Source of the DNA: Octopus sinensis
Taxonomy: Eukaryota
DNA length: 64,000 bases
Direction of reading: 5' to 3'
Assembly: GCF_006345805.1 (NCBI RefSeq)
Contig: NC_043012.1
Coordinates: 17,546,001 to 17,610,000 of the forward strand
This document shows positions 694-60,597 of this stretch, in pieces. The position numbers and the translations under genes were made by a program. Every line of letters starts with the position of its first letter. The first letter of the stretch is position 1. The notes below the pieces were generated by a model. That model was not told the origin of the DNA. It did not search any database and saw nothing but the letters and a program-made list of their open reading frames with translations.

Positions 694-1107
694 TATTCTT
701 TTATTCTTTTACTTGTTTCAGTCATTTGACTGCGGCCATGCTGGAGAACCGCCTTCAGTTGAGCAAACCGACCCCAGAACTTATTCTTTGTAAGCCTAAT
801 ACTTATTCTATTGGTCTCTTTTGCCGAACCGCTAAGTTACGGGGAGGTAAACGCACCAACATCTGTTGTCAAGCGATGGTGGTGGTGGGGGGGGGCAAAA
901 ACAGACACACAAACATGCACACACACATACACACACGTATATATATGACAAGCTTCTTTTAGTTTCCGCCTATCAAACCCACTCACAATGTTTTGATCGT
1001 CTCGAGGCTATAGTAGGAGGCACTTGCCCAAGGTGTCACGCTGTGGGACCGAACCCAGAACCATGTGGTTGGTAAGCCAGATACTTACCATACAACCAAC
1101 CTGTGCT
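694..1107 (-). mobile_element. tRNA-head SINE family A (CORE-like) with internal (CA)n/(TA)n
   Basis: Minus strand has a tRNA-like head followed by CCTTGGGCAAGTG, an internal microsatellite and the body ending CAGCATGGCCGCAGTCAAATGACTGAAACAAGTAAAAGAATA. Homologous copies at 5040, 8615, 31215, 53752 and 56402. Confidence 0.88.
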
Positions 1108-1217
1108 TATGTATGTATAAATGTATATATTAAATTATTTAATTGCTCAATTTATTATTTTGGTTTCCATTTCTAATTTATATACATATATGTGAAAATA
1201 TCTGTTCCGTTCTGGCT

Positions 1218-1321
1218 ATTTCTTACTGACGAATCTAAGGGCCTATGGAAGATTGGCTTGATAATTTAATCAGGTATTTACCATTAAGTATACATAGATA
1301 ACGGTGCATCGTATAAGAAAT
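1218..1321 (+). ncRNA. Type I hammerhead ribozyme motif, copy 1 (core lesion: GAAA reads AA)
   Basis: Stem I ATTTCTTA(1218-25)/TAAGAAAT(1314-21); CTGACGA 1226-32; stem II ATCTA/TAGAT(1295-99); then AACG-GTGCAT-CGTA, two nt short of GAAACG. Predicted cleavage after 1313. Confidence 0.7.
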
Positions 1322-1698
1322 TACAGGGTAAAGTTTTTTAATTCTCCTGGTTTGCGGAATTAATTTATTTTGCGTTGAAGCTTTGCTGTTATTTCTAGTG
1401 GGTGAATGGCCTATTATGGCCGTTCCTTGATTGTGATGTTGAACTTATAAATGGTCTATGACTATTAATTTTTTCCCACTAGGCCGCTGGTGGCAAAAAA
1501 ATTCTACAAAATTTTTTTTTTGCCACCCTATATTGAATAATATGAATTTTCTGGTTGATTCCGTAATGGAATCGGCGGCTTATATTTATTTGCTGCCGAT
1601 AAATTTGGCCGCGAGTGCGATGATTTGAAAATTTTAGGTCAGATATTGCCGAGGCAGGGACAGAAATGCCTCGTGAAAATATCTGTTCCGTTCTGGCT

Positions 1699-1804
1699 AT
1701 TTCTTACTGACGAATCTAAGGGCCTATGGAAGATTGGCTTGATTTAATTTAATCAGGTTAGTTTACCATTAAACAGTAGAGAAACGGTGCATCGTATAAG
1801 AAAT
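1699..1804 (+). ncRNA. Type I hammerhead ribozyme motif, copy 2
   Basis: ATTTCTTA(1699-1706) CTGACGA(1707-13) ATCTA...TAGA GAAACG GTGCAT CGTA(1793-96) TAAGAAAT(1797-1804). Lacks one T at the base of stem II. Predicted cleavage after 1796. Confidence 0.82.
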
Positions 1805-2184
1805 TACAGGGTAAATGTTTTTTAATTTTCTCCTGGTTTGCGGAATTAATGTTATTGCGGTTGAAGCTGTGGCTGTTATTTCTAGTGGGTGAATGGCCTA
1901 TTATGGCCGTTCCTTGATTGTGATGTTGAACTTATAAATGGTCTATGACTATTTAATTTTTTCCCACTAGGCCGCTGGTGGCAAAAAAATTCTACAAAAT
2001 TTTTTTTTTGCCACCTATATTGAATAATTATGAATTTTCTGGTTGATTCCGTAATGGAATCGGCGGCTTATATTTATTTGCTGCCGATAAAATTGGCGCG
2101 AGTGCGATGATTTGAAATTTTAGGTCAGATATTGCCGCGGCAGGGACAGAAATGCCTCGTGAAAATATCTGTTCCGTTCTGGCT

Positions 2185-2289
2185 ATTTCTTACTGACGAA
2201 TCTAAGGGCCTATGAAGATTGGCTTGATTTAATTTAATCAGGTTAGTTTACCATTAAACAGTAGATGAAACGGTGCATGTATAAGAAAT
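2185..2289 (+). ncRNA. Type I hammerhead ribozyme motif, copy 3 (complete catalytic core)
   Basis: ATTTCTTA(2185-92) CTGACGA(2193-99) ATCTA...TAGAT(2262-66) GAAACG GTGCA TGTA TAAGAAAT(2282-89). Stem III has a G-U in place of a G-C pair. Predicted GUA cleavage after 2281. Confidence 0.85.
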
Positions 2290-2420
2290 TACAGGGTAAA
2301 TGTTTTTTAATTTTTCTCTGGTTTGCGGAATTAATGTTATTTTGCGGTTGAAGCTTTGGCTGTTATTTCTAGTGGGTGAATGGCCTATTATGGCCGTTCC
2401 TTGATTGTGATGTTGAACAT

Positions 2421-2540: not shown

Positions 2541-2616
<76 letters not shown>

Positions 2617-2763
2617 TGGAAATGGAAACAAAATAATAAATTGAACAATTAAATAATTTAATATATACATTTATACATAACTAGGCACACACACACACAT
2701 ATATATATCAAATCAGTGTTATATACGGTATATTGTATATATTATATATATAATATAATATAG

Positions 2764-5039: not shown

Positions 5040-5211
5040 AGGCGCATGGAGTGACTTTGTGCTTCCCAACCACATGGCACCGGGTTCAGTCCCACTGCGT
5101 TGCACATTGGGCAAGTATCATCTACTATAGTCACGGGGAGTGTGAGTGGTCTTGGTAGACGGAAACTGAAAGAAGCCCGTCATATATACCTGTATATATA
5201 TATATATTATA

Positions 5212-5818: not shown

Positions 5819-8320
5819 ATTGTATTGTATGGCATCCTTCTGTCTCGGGAGACAATGGAGTTGCGCATTTTTTTTTTTCTAGGTCTAGTCCGGCTGTATA
5901 TTTTTATTTCCTGTTACATTTCTTGCTGTGGCTGTGTAGTCCTATCCTGGACAAACACACCTCTGGCAGATACTGCAAATGTAGCGAAGACTGTTCCTGG
6001 CTGGTTGTAGTGCCATGGTCTCTTGTTTATGTCTCTTCCTTTCTTTCCATTCTCCTCTCTCTTTCTTCTCTCTTCTCCGTCACTCCTCTGTATACCCTCT
6101 TTTACTGTACGTGTCGTCGCCATTCTCCACGGTTGCGGCGACTGCCTTCCCAACCGCTAATGTTGATGTTGCAGGCCTTCATATCCCTTTTGCAAACATC
6201 CTTGTAACGTAAGATCGGTCTACCCACAGACTTAGTACCCCTAGCAAGCTCTCCGTAGAGTATGTCCTTGGGGATTCTGCCATCTTTCATACGGCTAACA
6301 TGCCCAAGCCATCTCATACGTCTTTGTGTGAGGAGTGCAAACATGCTTGGTATTCCTGCTTGCCTGAGGACATCTTTGTTGGGGATATGATTCTGCCATT
6401 TGATGTGGAGGATTTTTCGGAGGCAGCGCAGGTGAAAGATGTTTAGGCGACGCTCTGGCGTGTGTATAGCGTCCAGGTCTCGCTTCCATACAGTAGAGTG
6501 CTGAGTACACATGCCTGGTAGATCTTCTTTTTGTGGTCTTGGTCAGCTTATTGTTGTCCCAAGCCCGTTTGGAGAGTTGGGCCATCGCAGCAGCTGCCTT
6601 GCCAATGCGTATATTGAGCTCAGCGTCAAGGGATAGGTTGTAGGTGACGGTAGAGCCCAGATAGGTAAACTTCTCCACCCTCTTGTAATCTGTGGTCTCC
6701 AATATGTATGTTTGGGATGTCCGATGTAGCCTGGCCCCATGATGTTGGTCTTCTTAAGGCTGATAGCTAAGCCAAAGTCGTTACATGCTTGCTCAAAACA
6801 GTTAATGAGCTTTGGAGGGCTTCTTCTTTGTGTGTTTACCAGAGCGGCATCATCAGCAAATAACATCTCCTTGATCAGGACGTTTCTGATTTTGGTCTTG
6901 GCACGCAGGCGCGAGAGATTGAACAGTTTCCCATCACTTCTACTGTGCAGAAACACTCCATCATCTGATGTCTGAAAGGCATGTGACAGTAAGAGTGAGA
7001 AGAAGATGCCAAACAATGTAGGAGCGAGGACACAGACTTGCTTTAACCCCCTTTTTATTTGGAAGGCGGCTGATGTTGAACCGTTTTCTGTATGGTGCCT
7101 TGCAGTCATCATGGAAAGACTTGATGATCCTCAGCAGCTTTGGTGGACATCCGATTTTTTGGAGCAGGAGGAAGAGGCCTGTTCTGCTTACCGAGTCAAA
7201 AGCCTTTGTTAGATCAATGAAGGCCATATATAATGGCATTTTCTGCTCTCTGGACTTCTCCTGAAGTTGGCGTATGGAGAATATCATATCGATAGTTGAT
7301 CTGCTTCTTCTAAAGCCACATTGCGATTCCGGATAGATTCGAGAAGCAAGTAGTTGTAGCCTGGCCAGGATAACGCGGGCAAAGGTCTTTCCAACAGTGC
7401 TTAGAAGGGATATACCACGGTAATTGTTACAATCACCACGGTCACCTTTGTTTTTGTAGAGCGTAATGATGTTGGCATCCCGCATATCCGAGGGACTGTA
7501 CCCTCTTCCCAGCACTGACACAGAAGCTCATGAAGGTGCCGAAGGAGGATGGTGTTTTTTGCCGGCTTTGATGATCTCTGAGGGGATGCCGTCTTTTCCC
7601 GGAGCCTTATTTCTTGCTAGGGAGTCAACAGCCTTGGTGAGCTCTGCTATAGATGGCGGACTGTCAAGTTCGCACATGACTGCAAGATCTTGACACTCTC
7701 GACTGCACCTCAGCCACTGTGGTCTCCCGTGAGTAGAGATCCTGGTAGTGCTCCACCCATCTATCCATTTGCTTGCCTTGATCCCTGATGAGATCTCCAG
7801 TAGTTGATTTCAAGGGGCTGACTTGGTTGCGGATGGACGGAGGGCCTTCTTCAAACCGGCATACATCCCACGGGTGTCGCCCCTGTCAGCAGCTGACTGG
7901 ATACTCTGACAGATTTCCTGCCAATACCTATTTGCACAGCGTCTGGCTGTCAGTTGGGTTTTATTTCGTGCCTTTCTGAGTTCTTCGAGTGACTTTGTAG
8001 AAGAGTCACTCTTGTATTGCACCAGAGCTGCACGCTTTGCTTCGATAACTGGCTCCAGCTCTGAGAGCCCAGCATTGAACCAATCTGGGTTTTGCCTTTC
8101 TCTCATGCCGAAAGTATCCAATGATGTCGTATACAAGGCTTCTCCCTAAAAAAGTCCATCGCTCCAAGAAAGTGGGCCGACCACGCATCAACACCGCCAG
8201 AACCTCGGACCCTACACTGCGAAAATGTTTTGCTGCTTCTATCAAGGTTGCCCTCAGTAGCTGCCCAACCTCCTCTGCTGAAAGTAGGTGGGACTATATC
8301 AGGAGCCTGTACCTCATTGG
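5814..8320 (-). mobile_element. RTE-clade LINE, 5'-truncated, frameshifted RT pseudo-ORF with intact 3' end
   Basis: Overlapping minus ORFs give KNKGDRGDCNNYRGISLLS, YPESQCGFR, FIDLTKAFDSV, LAPTLF, LFADDAAL, FTYLGS, RMRWLGHVSRM, GRPILRYKD and a terminal Cys/His motif. 3' UTR CCATTGTCTCCCGAGACAGAAGGATGCCA and a (TACAA)3 tail at 5814-5830. Confidence 0.95.
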
Positions 8321-8334
8321 ATATATAGATATAT

Positions 8335-8413
<79 letters not shown>

Positions 8414-8417
<4 letters not shown>

Positions 8418-8565
8418 CGGGCTTCTTTCAATGTCTGTCTACCAGATCCATTCACAAGGCTTTTGGTCAGCTCGAGGCTATAGTGGAAGACACTAAGCCC
8501 AAGGTGGCACGCAGTGGGGCTGAACCCGGATCCATGTGGCTCGTAAGCAAGCTACTTACCACACA
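8414..8565 (-). mobile_element. SINE family A head (5' part of the interrupted copy)
   Basis: CGACGGGCTTCTTTCA...CCCAAGGTGGCACGCAGTGGGGCTGAACCCGG...CTACTTACCAC directly after (TA)n 8321-8413. Confidence 0.8.
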
Positions 8566-8614
8566 TATGTATATATGCCTACGTATATATATATATATTT
8601 TTTTTTCTTTAATT

Positions 8615-9005
8615 TATTTATTTGTTTCTGTCATTTGAGTGCGGCCATGCTGGAGCACCAACTTTAGTCGAACAAATCGATCCCATGACTTATTCTTTGG
8701 AAGCCTAGTACATATTCTATCGGTAACATTTCCCCAACCACTAAGTTACGGGGATGTAAACACACCAACGTCAGTTGTCAATCGATGGTGGGAGGAGAAA
8801 CACAAACACATAAACACACACACACACTCACATACACAAACACACATACGATGGGTTTCTTTCAGTTTCCATCTACTAAATCCACTCACAAGGCTTTGGT
8901 TGGCCTGAGGCTATAGCAGAAGACACTTGCCCAAAGTGCCACGCACTGGGACTGAACCCCGAACGATGCGGTTGGTAACCAAGCTGTTTAACACACAGCC
9001 ACTCC

Positions 9006-9010
<5 letters not shown>
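8615..9010 (-). mobile_element. SINE family A, full-length
   Basis: Same body, (CA)n linker and tRNA-like head as the 694-1107 copy. Confidence 0.88.
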
Positions 9011-9044
<34 letters not shown>

Positions 9045-22976: not shown

Positions 22977-23930
22977 TTAGGTTGTTAAGAAAGTTCTTGC
23001 ACTTTTTAACCTTTAAATTCAGATGCACACATCTCGGCTCAAACAAAACTTTATTAATCGAAATAAACACCATCAGAATCAACACACTTTTGCCAACGCG
23101 AAACAAATTTATTGATGCCAGTAGCGTAAAAATCCTACGTTCTGGTGGCGATGAAGTCGTTGAAGGCGTGTTTGGCATCGCCTTGGTTTTTGAAGCATTT
23201 CTCATGCAGGAGATGCTTGAAGAAGTGGTAGTCGGTAGGCGAGACGTCTGGTCAGCATGGTGGATGAGGCAGAGTTTCGTAGCCCAATTCGTTCTACTTT
23301 TGCAGGGTCAGTTGTGCGACGTGCGGCCGAGCATTGTCGTGGTGAGAGTACTTCTCCGCCGTAATGGTTTCACCCGGATCCAAAAAGCTGTGATGGATAA
23401 AACCGGACGCAGACCACCAAGCAGTCACTATGACTTTCTTTTTGTGGCACTTTGGATTCGGGAAGTGCCGTGGAGCTTCGTCGGCGTCCAACCACTGAGC
23501 TGAGCGTCGCCGGTTGTAAAGAATCCACTATTCATCGCAAGTCAAAATCGGATCGAGAAACGGGTTATTCTTGTTGCGTAAAAGAAGGGAAGACGACACT
23601 TCAAAACGGTTTTTATTTTGGCTGTCGTACAATTTGTGCGGCACACATTTCTCAAGTATTTTTGTTTTTCCTATCTCTTTCAAGTGGTTGGAAATTGTTG
23701 TATGTGTTACGTCGAATTCAGAAGCAAGCCTCCGAACAATTATTCGTGGATTAGCTTTGACTAGGGCTCTTAGTTGATCGTTGTCAACGTCCGATGGCCG
23801 ATCACAACGCTTATCATCTTCATGTCTCTTGTCACCGCTACGGAATTTTTTTGAACCACCATTGTGTCGTACGCTCATTAGTGGATCCTGGGCCAAACGC
23901 ATCTTTTCGGCATAGGTTGAACTGGAATTA
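22977..23930 (-). mobile_element. Mariner transposon relic with internal deletion
   Basis: Minus frames: KFRSGD, CVPHKL, ILTCDE, HHDNARPHVA, SPTDYHFFKH, SRWQKCVDSDGVYFD. Terminus TTAGGTTGTTAAGAAAG after TA. No matching second TIR found. Confidence 0.9.
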
Positions 23931-31425: not shown

Positions 31426-31465
<40 letters not shown>

Positions 31466-31630
31466 TACGACGGGCTTCTTTCAGTTTCCGTCTACCAAAT
31501 CAACTCACAAGGCTTTGGTCGGCCCGAGGCTATAGTAGAAGACCTTGCCCAAGGTGCCCCGCAGTGGCACTGAATCTGGAGCCATGTGGTTGGTAGACAA
31601 GCTACGTACCACAGAGCCACTCCTGCACCT
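31215..31630 (-). mobile_element. SINE family A, full-length, with internal (CA)n(TA)n
   Basis: Body, microsatellite linker, then CGACGGGCTTCTTTCAGTTTCCGTCTACC...CTTGCCCAAGGTGCC. Confidence 0.9.
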
Positions 31631-32321
31631 ATGAAAATATTATGTATATATATATATATATAATATATATATATATATTATATATATATATACATATACA
31701 TATATATACACACATACACACAGGAACACACACATACACAAAACTCACACACACACACACACATATATATATATTCACTTACAAAATATCGTGTTCATTA
31801 AGTCGCATTAAGAGGCATCCAAAATGGAAAGCCTTGTGCTAGAAAGAGAGTAAAAAACTCAGACCACTAATTAGGGATAAATTCTCGAAAGGATTAAAAC
31901 GTATACCATCTAATTTAGTTCCTAGGCCATGGTTTCTAACTCATTCCAGTAAAAAAATATTCACTGAGGCTCGTTTTCGTCAGTAGGGAGCCTTTAGATT
32001 TCAAATATACACACAACTAGATTCGCAAGTACACTAGCTGCTTGTATATCCTGACTTTTCAAAACCACTGCGGTGATGCAGTTTGTTCCCGGCGACAGAG
32101 GGGATGCCGATAAAATTTCGAACAAATCTATCAAAAAATATTTAAACATAATAAATAATATTAGAGTAATAAGAATTATAGAAATTATTATTACCAGTTG
32201 TCTAGCAGAAAAAATTAGTCAATAGACTATACATTATTCACAAAAAAATATCGTGTGCATTAAGACACATTAAGAGGCTTCCAAATAGGAAAGCACTGGT
32301 AATAATAATTTCTATAATTCT

Positions 32322-38486: not shown

Positions 38487-38542
38487 AATTATTATTATCA
38501 TTATTATATTATTTTATTATTATTATTATTATTTTATTATTA

Positions 38543-38580
<38 letters not shown>

Positions 38581-38613
38581 TTATTAACATCATCATTATT
38601 ATTATTATTATTA

Positions 38614-38680
<67 letters not shown>

Positions 38681-38759
38681 CATCATATTATTATTATTAT
38701 TATTTTATTATTATTATTATTTTATTAGATTATTATATTATTATTATTATTAATCATCA

Positions 38760-38812
<53 letters not shown>

Positions 38813-38872
38813 ATTATTATTATATTATTATTATTAATCATCATCATTTTATTATTATTATTATTATTATTA

Positions 38873-38915
<43 letters not shown>

Positions 38916-38920
38916 CATCA

Positions 38921-38983
<63 letters not shown>

Positions 38984-39012
38984 TTTATTATTATTATTAA
39001 TCATCATCATTA

Positions 39013-39046
<34 letters not shown>

Positions 39047-39089
39047 TATTATTATTAATTATTATTATTATTATTATTATTAATCATCA

Positions 39090-39140
<51 letters not shown>

Positions 39141-39167
39141 TATTAATCATCATTATATTATTATTAA

Positions 39168-39200
<33 letters not shown>

Positions 39201-39205
39201 CATCA

Positions 39206-39247
<42 letters not shown>

Positions 39248-39265
39248 TATATTATAATTATTATT
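38487..39265. repeat. ~780-bp (ATT)n array with periodic AATCATCAT interruptions
   Basis: Directly visible. Confidence 0.95.
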
Positions 39266-39869: not shown

Positions 39870-40923
39870 TAAAACGATGGCAAATATTGGGCTTAGAAAA
39901 TCGGCGAGAAAATCAAAGATATTGAGACTAATGGATATAAATATCTGAGGATATTCAGAACAACTATGAAGAAAAAGAAGAAACAACAAAGGCTGTAAAG
40001 CAACTGAAATCCAAGCTAACGGATCATGGTAAAACGATAGTAAGAAAAGCCGCATCATGGCAAATATTGGGCTCGGCTAAACTGAAAAAGATAGGCAAAT
40101 ATAATCTCAACAATGGATGAGAAGCTCAGTAGTCAAAGCAGAGACTGATAGATTTTAATTCCAGCCCTAGATCAAAATCTCCGCACCAGAAATCACCCAA
40201 AACATATTATGAAAGAGAAACACAAGTAACTAAAAAATATATGGTGATGGAGAAGAAACAATAAATTATATAATCTCTGGCTGCCCAGTTCTGGCTAAGA
40301 AGTAATATATTCACAGACATGACAAAGTTGGGACCTTTATACACTGAAAGTTATGTAAACACTGGAGAAACAACAGAAAAAAGATGGTATAGGCACATGC
40401 CAGAAAAGGTCACAGAAAATGAGAAAACAACCATACTGTGGGATATGCTAATACACACAAATAGAGTGCTAATACACACTTCATCCGCCAACAGGCCAGA
40501 TGAAGATGTTAGAGATCACGAAGAAAAATATGCTTACTAATCGATATCTTAATACCATCAGATGACAATGTTTCTCTAAAAAAAAAAAAACAAAAAAAAC
40601 GGAGACATTTTCAAAACACATAAATCTGGAAATAAAGGTGAGTCGAATGTGGAGCTTAAAAACATAAACAAGTCCTATAATAAAAGGTGCATTAGGTATG
40701 ATGAAAAAGTATTAAGACACATACATAACCAAAACACCAGGACTTACAAGTATACATAACAAACAGAGGATAGTACTATTAGGCATCGCATACATCCAAC
40801 GTAAAGCTTTTTCAATACAGTGAAACTAAGAGCATCACCACAAACCACAGCATATACCCAAGGCACACACAACTGCGCTCGGTTGTGCAATGAAAGCACG
40901 TGAAAAAGATAAGACCACTGAGT
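39870..40923 (+). mobile_element. R4/Dong-type retrotransposon, ~1-kb 3' fragment followed by (AAT)n
   Basis: KPHHGKYWARLN, QWMRSSVVKAET, DQNLRTRNH, IISGCPVLAKK*YIHRHDKVG, WYRHMPEKVTENEKTTILWDM, ANRPD, IDILIPSDDNVS, GALG. The 3' UTR ends at AATAAT. Confidence 0.9.
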
Positions 40924-40930
40924 AATAATG

Positions 40931-40977
<47 letters not shown>

Positions 40978-41003
40978 TAATAATAATGATGATGATAGTC
41001 GTT

Positions 41004-41051
<48 letters not shown>

Positions 41052-41092
41052 ATAATAATAATAATAATAATAGTAATAATAATAACAATAAC

Positions 41093-41130
<38 letters not shown>

Positions 41131-41134
41131 CAAC

Positions 41135-41209
<75 letters not shown>
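40924..41209. repeat. (AAT)n/(GTA)n microsatellite array
   Basis: Directly visible. Confidence 0.95.
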
Positions 41210-49278: not shown

Positions 49279-49550
49279 AGAAACAAACACAGGGGAAGTG
49301 TATGTATGTATGTATGTATGTATGTATGTATGTATGTATGTATGTATGTATGTATGTATGTATGTATGTATGTATCTATCTATTTGTGTATGTATGTGTG
49401 TATGTACGTATGGGTGTTTGTATATATGTATGTTTGCGTGCATGCATGTGTGTATGTATGTTTGCATGTATGTATGTATGTATGTATGTATGTATATATG
49501 TATGTATATATGCAGGTATGTATGTATATATATATATACATACACACACG
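49279..49550. repeat. (GTAT)n tetranucleotide microsatellite
   Basis: Directly visible. Confidence 0.93.
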
Positions 49551-53751: not shown

Positions 53752-54030
53752 GATATGGCTGTCTATGTTAAGAAGCTTGCTTTCTAAACATACGGTTCCG
53801 GGTCCACTCCCACTGCGTGGCACCTTTGGCAAGTGTCTTCTACTATAGCAGCGGGGTGACCAAAGTCTTGTGAGTAGATTTGGTAGACGGAAACTGAATG
53901 AATCCCTTTGTATATATATGTATATATCTGTGTGTCTGTCTCTGACCCCCAGCATCGCTTGACAGCCGATGTTAGTGTGTTTCCGTCCATGTAATTTAAT
54001 GGTTCGGCAAAAGACACTGATAGAATAAGT
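53752..54030 (+). mobile_element. SINE family A, 3'-truncated at (CA)n
   Basis: GGTTCCGGGTCCACTCCCACTGCGTGGCACCTTTGGCAAGTGTCTTCTACTATAGC...GGTAGACGGAAACTGAA. Confidence 0.85.
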
Positions 54031-56401: not shown

Positions 56402-56787
56402 TTCTTTTATTTGTTTCAGTCATTTGACTACCGTCATGCTGGAGCACCGCCTTGAGCGGTTTACACCAAAGAAATCGATCGAGCCCAGGACTTAATTTTT
56501 AAAGCCTAGTACTTATTCTATCAGGCTCATTTGGCGAACCGCTATGTTACGGGTACCTAAACACACCAACACCGGTTCTCAAGTGGTGATGGCGGTAAAG
56601 ACATAGACACAAAGACACACACACATATATATACAACAGGCTTCTTTCAGTTTCCTTCTACCAAATCCACTTAGAAGGCTTTGGTTGACCCGATGCTATA
56701 GTAGAAGACACTTGCCTAAGTGGGACTGAGCCCAGAACGATGTGATTGGGAAGCAAGCTTCTTACAACACTGCCACGCCTGCGCCTA
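56402..56787 (-). mobile_element. SINE family A, near full-length
   Basis: Same body/linker/head order as the other copies. Confidence 0.85.
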
Positions 56788-57952
56788 CATATCTATCTAG
56801 AATATCAGACCAACATTAATTTTTGCTCACTATTATCACGAGGCCGAAGTTTGGATCTTTAAATTCGCTTCTATCATATTTCTGAGGATTAATTTATGAG
56901 TTTCCTCTGCACATATATTTAAATGTAGTTGGATCTTGCAGATTTCTTTCTGCTAGGATATGTAGAAAACATTACGATAAAGCGAGTTGGAGTTGTAAAC
57001 AGCCTCAAACGACTGATATATAATGGCATTAAGAAGATCTAAAACATTCATTTTCATTTGATTCGAAACGATGGCTGTATTATATACATTTATCGTGGAG
57101 AAAAGAGCGGTGAGACGTTCATAATTATCCTTAGGATAATAGCATTCTGTGCGACGTGAAATTACATAAATCGGGAGTGAAATGGAGTCAGTGGTCGTGT
57201 AGATTTTACCGGAGTTTACATCTTAGCTGATGTATAGTGTTCGTTAACAATATTTAGGAACGAGATATTGATTTTTTTTCTAACGAGTCAAAACACCAAT
57301 TCTTATAGAGCAAGGCAAATAATCGATGAAATCAATTCAGTATGTTGTTGGTTAATTTCGATCGATGCAAAGCAAGCCAAAGGCAAATATGACCAAGCAG
57401 AGATTCACTCAGTATGATGGTGGTCTAAAATATGTACCACAAAGCGTTCTATCTTTTCTCGCAACTAATTGCTAGAATTTACCAAAAATGATTTGTATAT
57501 TTGTTTAACTTTGCAGCTAGCCTTACATTATATGGGAAATGGATATGGGGTTTGTGATGTTTATTCTTTACATTACTTCACTGAGGATACAAGTTGATTG
57601 CATTTGGATCAACAATCAAACCTCGCGTCTAGCCGACACTGCGTCGATAAAATATTACGTATAAATTTATATCTTGTAAGATATTCTCTTTGAAGGTTTA
57701 AATTAAGTGCCAAGTCCTGGCTTCCTGTGTTTGCTTATACAATTACTAAGCAAAAGCTTGACGCTGTAGTTAAAGTCCCCGTACCATACTTCCGCTTGTA
57801 CTTTGCGTTTGCTGATTACTTTCGGTGTCTACGTAGAATTAGATACCTTCTTGGTCCTCCCGCTGTTGAACCAGCGGATCAGCCATTACGTGACAATTGC
57901 AAAGAGAGTGAGCAGTGCTCCAACATTTAGTTTTTAATAATATTCATCTGCA

Positions 57953-59350: not shown

Positions 59351-60452
59351 CGATGAACTAACATATTAGAAAAAAAGATTATTCCTACTATTCAAAACTT
59401 GAAGTGACTCAAGTTGTTGCGTGGTGGATTAAAAACATGGAAGTGTTTCGATGAAATCTTTCTAGACCAGCTCCGGTTTATATCTATGCAATAAAAAGAA
59501 AAGCAACATAATGATCAATCATATATGAGGCGCTCCCAACTAGCCTTATCCCTTAACTGCAATTTGCAACCTTGTAGCAGGCAATATGTGGAAGGAGTAA
59601 CAAACAATATGCTGCAAATAAAATATGAAGCTTGTCAATGCATCAAATCTCATGATGGATTATAATGATTATTCCACCACACTACACAGCAGTTATAAAA
59701 CTATCCTAGCCATTACAGCAATGTGAGTGGGAGAAAGTGTTATCGAAGTCAAACATTGTTATTTTTCAATATGCTCCGCATTTAGTATATTCCTGAAAGA
59801 TTGACCATCATTCAAAATCGCCAAATACATCCATGAGCATTTTGCTACTCTCTTTAAATTATTATTAAATTAATAATGATAAACACTACATTTGTTTATC
59901 TCGTAATTTATTGTAAATTGTCTTTTCTGTCAGATTCTATCAAGATGGCCATTCAATCAACCTGTCTGTTACTGTATGTTGGAGAATCCTATTTAATAGA
60001 CTTGCAGCGTTTTACCGCAGTCGACGCTTGATGTTTCCTAAAGGAACCGACTATAGTTTAGGGCTCATCCTTGCTTGCATCACAACTAAATTGCAAAGCT
60101 ATTTGTACCTTCAGAGTTTTTACATTCTACTTTACCCTGCATCTCATCGCCTTCATAATTGAGATCCACTGCAATAGAAGGAAATGTAGCAAACGCGACA
60201 ACCCCCAAAATCAACAAATGGTCTTAACAGTAATTCATGGCTGATGAAGTGATTAGTGGTATCAACGACTACGACATCAACACCAATAAGTAAGAGCAGC
60301 CAATGGTAGCTGCGAAAACAGCTTTAATGAATAGTAACATTTGCAGCTGCATTACAAGTCACTGGCACTGCTTTGATAATAAAAATAAAAATAATAATAA
60401 TAATAATAGTAATAATAATAATAGTAATAATAATAATAACAACAACAACAAC

Positions 60453-60495
<43 letters not shown>

Positions 60496-60536
60496 GCAAT
60501 AATAAAAATAAAAATAATAATAATAATAATAATAGC

Positions 60537-60597
<61 letters not shown>

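Follow-up and report, generated by a model that had tools for sequence, protein, structure and literature searches.

Decayed type I hammerhead motifs in a retrozyme-like tandem array of the Octopus sinensis genome

A 64,000-nucleotide stretch of Octopus sinensis DNA (contig NC_043012.1, positions 17,546,001 to 17,610,000 of the forward strand; hereafter the window, in which all coordinates are counted) contains a tandem array of 2.5 units of ~484 bp at 1192-2417 on the + strand, with three copies of a type I hammerhead ribozyme motif. We interpret this array as an old, decayed insertion of a non-coding tandem repeat that bears a hammerhead and is of the metazoan retrozyme type without long terminal repeats (non-LTR retrozyme), a reading to which we assign a probability of roughly 60%. 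It is the best fit to the anatomy of the motif and to its context. The array would add one more family to elements already known from molluscs and many other phyla, and the region 1192-2417 should be annotated as a retrozyme-like hammerhead repeat rather than as an anonymous minisatellite.

The ~483-bp tandem repeat announced in the original prediction is real. Tandem Repeats Finder placed it at 1192-2423, with a period of 487, 2.5 copies, 95% matches and 3% indels, and this was the sole long-period array reported across the window. Combining MAFFT and BLAST set the unit boundaries at 1192-1676, 1677-2160 and 2161-2417, copies 1 and 3 being 94.3% and 96.2% identical to copy 2, respectively. 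Copies 1 and 2 are separated by 14 substitutions and 14 indel events; because the units differ by substitutions as well as by indels, the array is not an exact assembly duplication. The GC content of the unit and of the array is 36.6-36.9%, and the longest open reading frame (ORF) in the array encodes 56 amino acids. No protein relatives of the unit were found in a six-frame pseudo-protein search against 5.8 billion proteins, and exact look-ups of its 56-aa and 40-aa ORFs gave no match.

The hammerhead elements follow type I order, with the 5′ strand of stem I (ATTTCTTA), the core CTGACGA (C3-A9), helix II, GAA (G12-A14), stem III, A17, and the 3′ strand of stem I (TAAGAAAT). Helix II is formed by ATCTA...TAGAT around a 57-nt insert, giving a domain of 67 nt in all, and in copies 2 and 3 a 14-bp hairpin forms within the insert, in line with the unusually long, hairpin-bearing helix II first noted for this element. 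Stem III pairs A-C-G-(G) with (U)-C-G-U and is closed by a palindromic UGCA loop. In all three copies, a 5-bp extension of stem I (UUCUG/CAGGG) is predicted beyond a GCU/UA internal loop; in copy 3, stem I extended in this way spans 2177-2296 on the + strand (TTCTG at 2177-2181 and CAGGG at 2292-2296, across the GCT/TA internal loop). The predicted cleavage positions lie after 1313, 1796 and 2281. The sequence agrees with the original prediction on the named elements and on these sites; the further claim that every unit holds the full set did not survive, since copies 1, 2 and 3 each carry a deletion (of G12-A13, U11.1 and C16.3, respectively).

Copy 3 (2185-2289, + strand) has a complete core and all three helices. 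Stem I pairs 2185-2192 with 2282-2289 (8 bp), CTGACGA occupies 2193-2199 with C3 at 2193, helix II pairs ATCTA at 2200-2204 with TAGAT at 2262-2266 (5 bp), and GAA lies at 2267-2269. Stem III pairs 2270-2272 with 2278-2280 (A-U, C-G and G.U), ending at U2280 and followed by A17 at 2281. Deletion of C16.3 makes this copy read GCAT-GTA, with the 3-bp stem III re-formed through the G.U pair. Helix I is open, and helices II and III are closed by loops. Among the three copies, only this one passed a strict type I descriptor (helices of 8, 5 and 3 bp), and the conserved type I core (C3-A9, G12-A14, A15.1-U16.1, and H17 other than G) is found both here and in the reconstructed ancestor. Constraining the fold to the hammerhead costs only 1.2-3.3 kcal/mol relative to the unconstrained minimum free energy (MFE).

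In copy 2 (1699-1804, + strand), CTGACGA (1707-1713), GAAAC and stem III (ACGG/TCGT) are all intact, with the cleavage site after 1796. This copy reads TAGA-GAAAC, the deletion of U11.1 leaving an unpaired A after A9, and its helix II begins with TCTA/TAGA. Copy 1 (1218-1321, + strand) is defective. Its stem I (1218-1225/1314-1321), CTGACGA (1226-1232) and helix II are present, and it reads TAGAT-AAC, GAAA having been cut to AA by the G12-A13 deletion, with a nominal cleavage site after 1313. On the minus strand, a second ribozyme was ruled out, as neither the type I descriptor nor Rfam gave a match.

The lesions differ among the three copies, and at each affected position the canonical base is shared by the two remaining copies; the ancestral unit therefore had a full core and three helices. 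The MAFFT alignment bears out the earlier statement that the majority consensus of the three copies is a complete core, and a fortuitous motif would not be expected to approach the canonical form as its history is reconstructed. For copy 3 and the ancestral unit, the hammerhead reading has good support. G12 and A13 are essential to the hammerhead mechanism, and copy 1, judged by its sequence, should be catalytically inactive. The single-base deletions of copies 2 and 3 may be tolerated. Copy 2 in particular may not be dead, because Penelope-element hammerheads are described as usually having an unpaired base at the 5′ start of stem II. Without G12 in copy 1, the predicted 1314-1796 monomer should not be released; of the two monomers originally proposed, the locus would yield at most the one of 485 nt at 1797-2281 (+ strand), between the cleavage sites of copies 2 and 3.

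A relaxed type I descriptor (stem I of at least 4 bp, stem II of at least 3 bp, stem III of at least 2 bp, and a helix II of up to 110 nt) matched 0.027 times per dinucleotide-shuffled window (300 shuffles, both strands), and none of the 300 shuffled windows reached helices of 5/4/3 bp or the observed 8/5/3 bp. Extrapolating with a pairing probability of ~0.38 for each of seven extra pairs gave a chance of ~3e-5 per window for an 8/5/3 motif. The context, tandem units of a few hundred bp, is the known setting of metazoan type I hammerheads, which argues against chance. When the 2176-2300 segment was searched with Rfam, Hammerhead_1 (RF00163) was the best of 4227 families and was aligned over its full model (positions 1-45) with the same helices as in the original prediction; the alignment departs from the model at the 57-nt loop 2 insert and at the A-U 10.1-11.1 pair.

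The unit is also strongly structured as RNA. The monomer at 1797-2281 has an MFE of -147.5 kcal/mol (z of -5.2 to -5.9), and in its predicted fold stem I closes the molecule, joining both ends spatially. Folded as a circle, it reaches -141.3 kcal/mol (z of -5.3), with a predicted junction of ...GGUGCAUCGUA|UAAGAAAU... (GUA|UAAG); the other monomer has a z of -6.3. Since the minus strand of the unit also reaches z-scores of -4.5 to -5.0, inverted repeats at the DNA level account for many of the hairpins. The predicted fold contains 23-33 G.U pairs on the + strand and 2 on the minus strand, an asymmetry that hints at selection on the + strand RNA. The hammerhead strand of 1797-2281 is 59% G+U and its MFE is ~45 kcal/mol below that of the complementary strand, while the z-scores differ only modestly; with strongly negative z-scores on both strands, this folding asymmetry says little. 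Each full unit carries a 13-bp A7/T10 hairpin (GGTGGCAAAAAAA...TTTTTTTTTTGCCACC; 1489-1527 and 1977-2015, + strand). Its T10 run would be expected to terminate RNA polymerase III on the hammerhead strand, so multimeric + strand transcripts would need RNA polymerase II or read-through. A tRNA-like or RNA polymerase III origin of the unit was ruled out, since ARAGORN made no call and a T10 run is present in each unit.

The array is bordered by TA-rich DNA on both sides. Its 3′ end adjoins a 195-bp (AT)n microsatellite (2418-2612), the putative target tract, and its 5′ end adjoins TATATACATATAT, 12 TA-rich nucleotides at 1180-1191. Since it begins 122 nt before the first cleavage site and stops 136 nt after the third, the array ends mid-unit on both sides, as would be expected if copying of a circular or multimeric template had begun at an arbitrary position. 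The unit sequence just past the 3′ junction (TTATAAAT) resembles the TA-rich target, and priming by microhomology at such a target is conceivable. Penelope-like elements have an insertion bias for microsatellites, with (TA)n a common target in the Naiad clade.

An inverted repeat of ~90 nt flanks the array and the tract. Its left arm (1101-1191, + strand), composed of ~43 nt of the end of a SINE-like (short interspersed element) repeat and ~47 nt of unique flank, is ~92% identical to the right arm (2601-2690, minus strand). The repeat is specific to this locus (local alignment score of 143, against 12-44 at the flanks of 21 other (AT)n tracts), so we rejected it as a general feature of (AT)n tracts, and because it copies a SINE/flank junction we also rejected it as a transposon terminal repeat. 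The copied junction indicates that the DNA was duplicated locally, in inverted orientation, about the (AT)n tract. This may have happened by fold-back repair at an (AT)n cruciform or as a by-product of the insertion.

The retrozyme layout that was originally proposed finds support in several respects. The 2.5 units of ~484 bp are tandem, within the published size range and associated with a type I hammerhead, their monomer is highly self-paired, and they adjoin a (TA)n site. They are also non-coding and low in GC (below the 45-50% expected), and we count them as lacking LTRs, primer-binding sites and polypurine tracts, although no search was aimed at the latter two. The original prediction knew of no such long-stem-II, ~480-nt family from a cephalopod; the length of the unit is ordinary, since a 2026 survey preprint reports retrozyme consensus lengths of 51-972 bp, with at most seven units in 75% of families. 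The long helix II is the distinctive trait here, and unit length and the short array are ordinary.

Several observations weigh against the retrozyme reading. The original prediction had named an Rfam hammerhead search as a check, and the curated threshold was missed. No family reached its gathering threshold in the whole window, no ribozyme family was found at E<=10 in 1000-2500 on either strand, and copy 3, the only copy to be aligned, scored 14.4 bits (E=0.65) against RF00163, for which the gathering threshold is 34 bits; scans of copies 1 and 2 at the 125-nt scale gave no hammerhead match. A BLASTN search (word size 7) found no second copy of the unit in the 64-kb window, and exact 21-24-mers from both hammerhead halves had no match in metagenome, viral or prokaryote-genome contigs. 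The strength of the motif is no proof in itself, as ~3e-5 per window corresponds to about one such motif per 3-Gb genome. The anatomy is also atypical. In canonical metazoan type I hammerheads, helix I has ~6 bp, helix II ~4 bp and helix III 1-2 bp; the loop contacts of helix II are conserved, and the loop of helix III is palindromic. Even the "long" or "large" helices II of the hammerhead literature that we compared have 6-8 bp. The 8-bp stem I and the 57-nt helix II insert depart from the canonical 6 bp and 4 bp, the internal loops, which interrupt stem I after 8 bp (GCU/UA) and helix II after 5 bp, match that pattern in neither position nor sequence, and no recognisable loop-loop contact between helices I and II was seen. 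The 10.1-11.1 pair, a G-C that is the most conserved hammerhead pair after 15.1-16.1, is A-U in copies 1 and 3, and its A is unpaired in copy 2; Watson-Crick variants at this pair do occur in the active pDo500 family (PMC2837043). Conservation of the hammerhead region does not exceed that of the remaining unit, and in copy 1 falls below it, so the genomic copies look decayed, and no compensatory stem changes were found among the three local copies. A 6-bp target-site duplication (ATATAT) is possible but inseparable from the microsatellite, and none is clear in the TA-rich flanks. Finally, no Penelope-like ORF was found among the large ORFs of the window, where a LINE-type (long interspersed element) RVT_1 and a Tc1/mariner-like helix-turn-helix (HTH) were seen.

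If the array is a retrozyme insertion, its life cycle may have run as follows. A multimeric + strand transcript would fold a type I hammerhead at each unit junction, with a stem I of 8 bp and its 5-bp extension, a helix II domain of 67 nt, and a stem III of 3-4 bp with the palindromic UGCA loop. Cutting after GUA would give ~484-nt monomers with 5′-OH and 2′,3′-cyclic phosphate ends, which stem I would keep together until an enzyme of the tRNA-ligase type, or the reverse hammerhead reaction, closed the circle. The reverse transcriptase (RT) of an autonomous element, most likely Penelope-like, would then copy the circle more than once around, and the multimeric cDNA would integrate at a (TA)n tract. 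We infer all of these steps, from transcription, cleavage and circularisation to reverse transcription, as well as the identity of the mobilising element.

The array could instead be a fragment of a Penelope-like element, made of tandem pseudo-LTRs or 3′ ends that carry their own hammerhead, with no independent retrozyme family involved. Such elements insert as partial tandems, have pseudo-LTRs with type I hammerheads and are biased towards microsatellites; helix II is larger in their hammerheads, and stem II has an unpaired 5′ base, as in copy 2 (PMC4209133). A 2026 preprint in which retrozymes form the sister group of Penelope-like pseudo-LTRs also favours this explanation. However, neither an RT nor a GIY-YIG remnant lies between or beside the contiguous units, the six-frame search of the unit was empty, the sole nearby RT (6100-7530) is of the LINE type (RVT_1), and the full helix III and long stem I found here are unlike the minimal Penelope hammerheads. 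We therefore consider this origin unlikely. Slightly less probable again is a hammerhead satellite or local tandem duplication produced by slippage or unequal crossing-over, without retrotransposition of a circle, as for newt satellite 2 or cricket pDo500; the role of the ribozyme would then be to process transcripts. The ~500-bp units of pDo500 do carry a type I hammerhead (PMC2837043), a single locus was seen in the window, and the unstable (AT)n neighbour together with the locus-specific inverted duplication points to local DNA rearrangement; yet the array has no more than 2.5 units, its hammerhead lacks the preferential conservation seen in pDo500, and the classical hammerhead satellites have since been reinterpreted in the literature as retrozymes.

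We regard as very improbable that the motif is a chance likeness in an ordinary non-coding tandem repeat that was never a ribozyme. This would account for the sub-threshold Rfam score, the A-U 10.1-11.1 pair, the oversized helix II and a lesion in every copy, and by extrapolation about one equally strong motif is expected per 3 Gb. It sits badly with the shuffled windows, none of which (0/300) gave a motif of equal strength, with the known type I hammerhead context, with a reconstructed ancestor that is more canonical than any extant copy, and with a strongly structured unit in which stem I extends past the descriptor and the stem III loop is palindromic. Least credible of all is that noisy long reads produced the array, or its indels, as an artefact during assembly. 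Indels do make up ~3% of columns, many of them in homopolymer runs, and the three core lesions are all small deletions, but substitutions between units are as frequent (14, against 14 indel events, for copies 1 and 2), the flanks are unique and continuous, and an artefact would not create a hammerhead.

Other repeats surround the array. The SINE-like repeat just upstream (940-1144, minus strand) has seven other diverged copies in the window, among them those at 5061-5188, 8408-8614, 8857-9034, 31462-31664, 53764-53918 and 56628-56796. The family shows 72-77% identity, a B-box-like GGTTCGGTCCC and microsatellite-rich ends, and ARAGORN calls no tRNA in it; we take it, as a lead only, to resemble the abundant tRNA-derived SINE of octopus. 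The LINE RT remnant (~6100-7530, minus strand) matches RVT_1 (E=1.9e-17) and is split among four ORFs that overlap in different frames. Its closest proteins, 60-81% identical, come from European Nucleotide Archive contigs, snails, a turtle and a butterfly. In two contigs that were compared (47-52% GC), a related RT gene adjoins an Exo_endo_phos endonuclease gene, and neither the hammerhead unit nor the SINE is present in either contig. A 124-aa ORF at 23528-23902 (minus strand), with weak matches to HTH_Tnp_Tc3_2 and to an IS630-type HTH, is probably the remnant of a Tc1/mariner transposase. The window as a whole has 35% GC and dense AT, ATT and TGTA microsatellites, with 98 tandem-repeat rows. 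This composition and these microsatellites, together with the SINE copies and the LINE RT and Tc1/mariner-like remnants, mark the DNA as metazoan. Very long tracts include (ATT)n of ~263 units at 38488-39265, (TAA)n of ~96 units at 40923-41209, (ATA)n of ~73 units at 60376-60595 and (TGTA)n of ~59 units at 49299-49535.

As a single decayed locus, the array matters mainly for the annotation of 1192-2417. More tentatively, and with odds that we would put against it, the locus may be one relic of a still-active, lineage-specific retrozyme family whose hammerhead has, instead of the usual 4-bp helix and loop, a structured helix II domain of ~67 nt, with an A-U 10.1-11.1 pair. A hammerhead of this form falls short of the Rfam threshold and outside the canonical helix sizes on which descriptors rely. 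In that event, hammerhead and retrozyme censuses would undercount in cephalopods or molluscs, and on a long helix II an internal-loop contact could stand in for the tertiary contact between helices I and II. Were the family both multi-copy and active, cephalopod-type genomes would join the phyla that make abundant ribozyme-derived circular RNAs, standard covariance models would be shown to miss part of the hammerhead repertoire, and a natural hammerhead with a very long helix II would become available, useful for how peripheral elements tune cleavage and ligation.

Hammerheads are not new in themselves in cephalopods, as the paper on the giant squid genome counts 235 loci assigned to Rfam Hammerhead_1. 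Compared with Rfam Hammerhead_1 (RF00163), copy 3 has the core and three helices in register over the whole model, and it differs in the 57-nt loop 2 insert and a sub-threshold score, with copies 1 and 2 unmatched. The minimal hammerheads in the pseudo-LTRs of Penelope-like elements (Cervera and de la Pena 2014, PMC4209133) share with the octopus motif the type I order, a larger helix II, the tandem arrangement, a palindromic loop 3 and, in copy 2, the unpaired 5′ base of stem II. They have no or a very short helix III and a stem I of 2-5 bp, against 3-4 bp and 8 bp here, and they act as dimers and flank an RT-endonuclease ORF, whereas no ORF is present here. The pDo500 family of Dolichopoda cave crickets (PMC2837043) is similar in its ~500-bp unit, its type I hammerhead, the G.U pair in stem III and its variation at 10.1/11.1. 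Unlike the octopus array of 2.5 units, pDo500 is a large satellite, and its hammerhead has 49 nt and is extra-conserved across 12 species, while ours has 105 nt and is not preferentially conserved.

The closest likeness is to the non-LTR retrozymes, which are tandem, low-GC, non-coding units of 150-450 bp with one type I hammerhead each (PMC7229834), as in the families of mussels (350-390 bp) and corals (220-240 bp) (Cervera and de la Pena, NAR 2020, PMC7229834). Corals, mussels and salamanders express retrozymes as circular, self-paired RNAs, and repeats of a retrozyme-like kind are reported from many other invertebrate phyla. The octopus array departs from them (PMC7229834) in its 67-nt helix II domain, in place of ~4 bp and a loop, in a stem I of 8 bp plus extension rather than ~6 bp, in the A-U 10.1-11.1 pair, in having no recognisable contact between loops 1 and 2, and in being seen at a single locus in the window. 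It shares with them (PMC7229834) short tandem non-coding units with one hammerhead per unit, a GC content below 45%, self-paired monomers, and arrays from dimers up.

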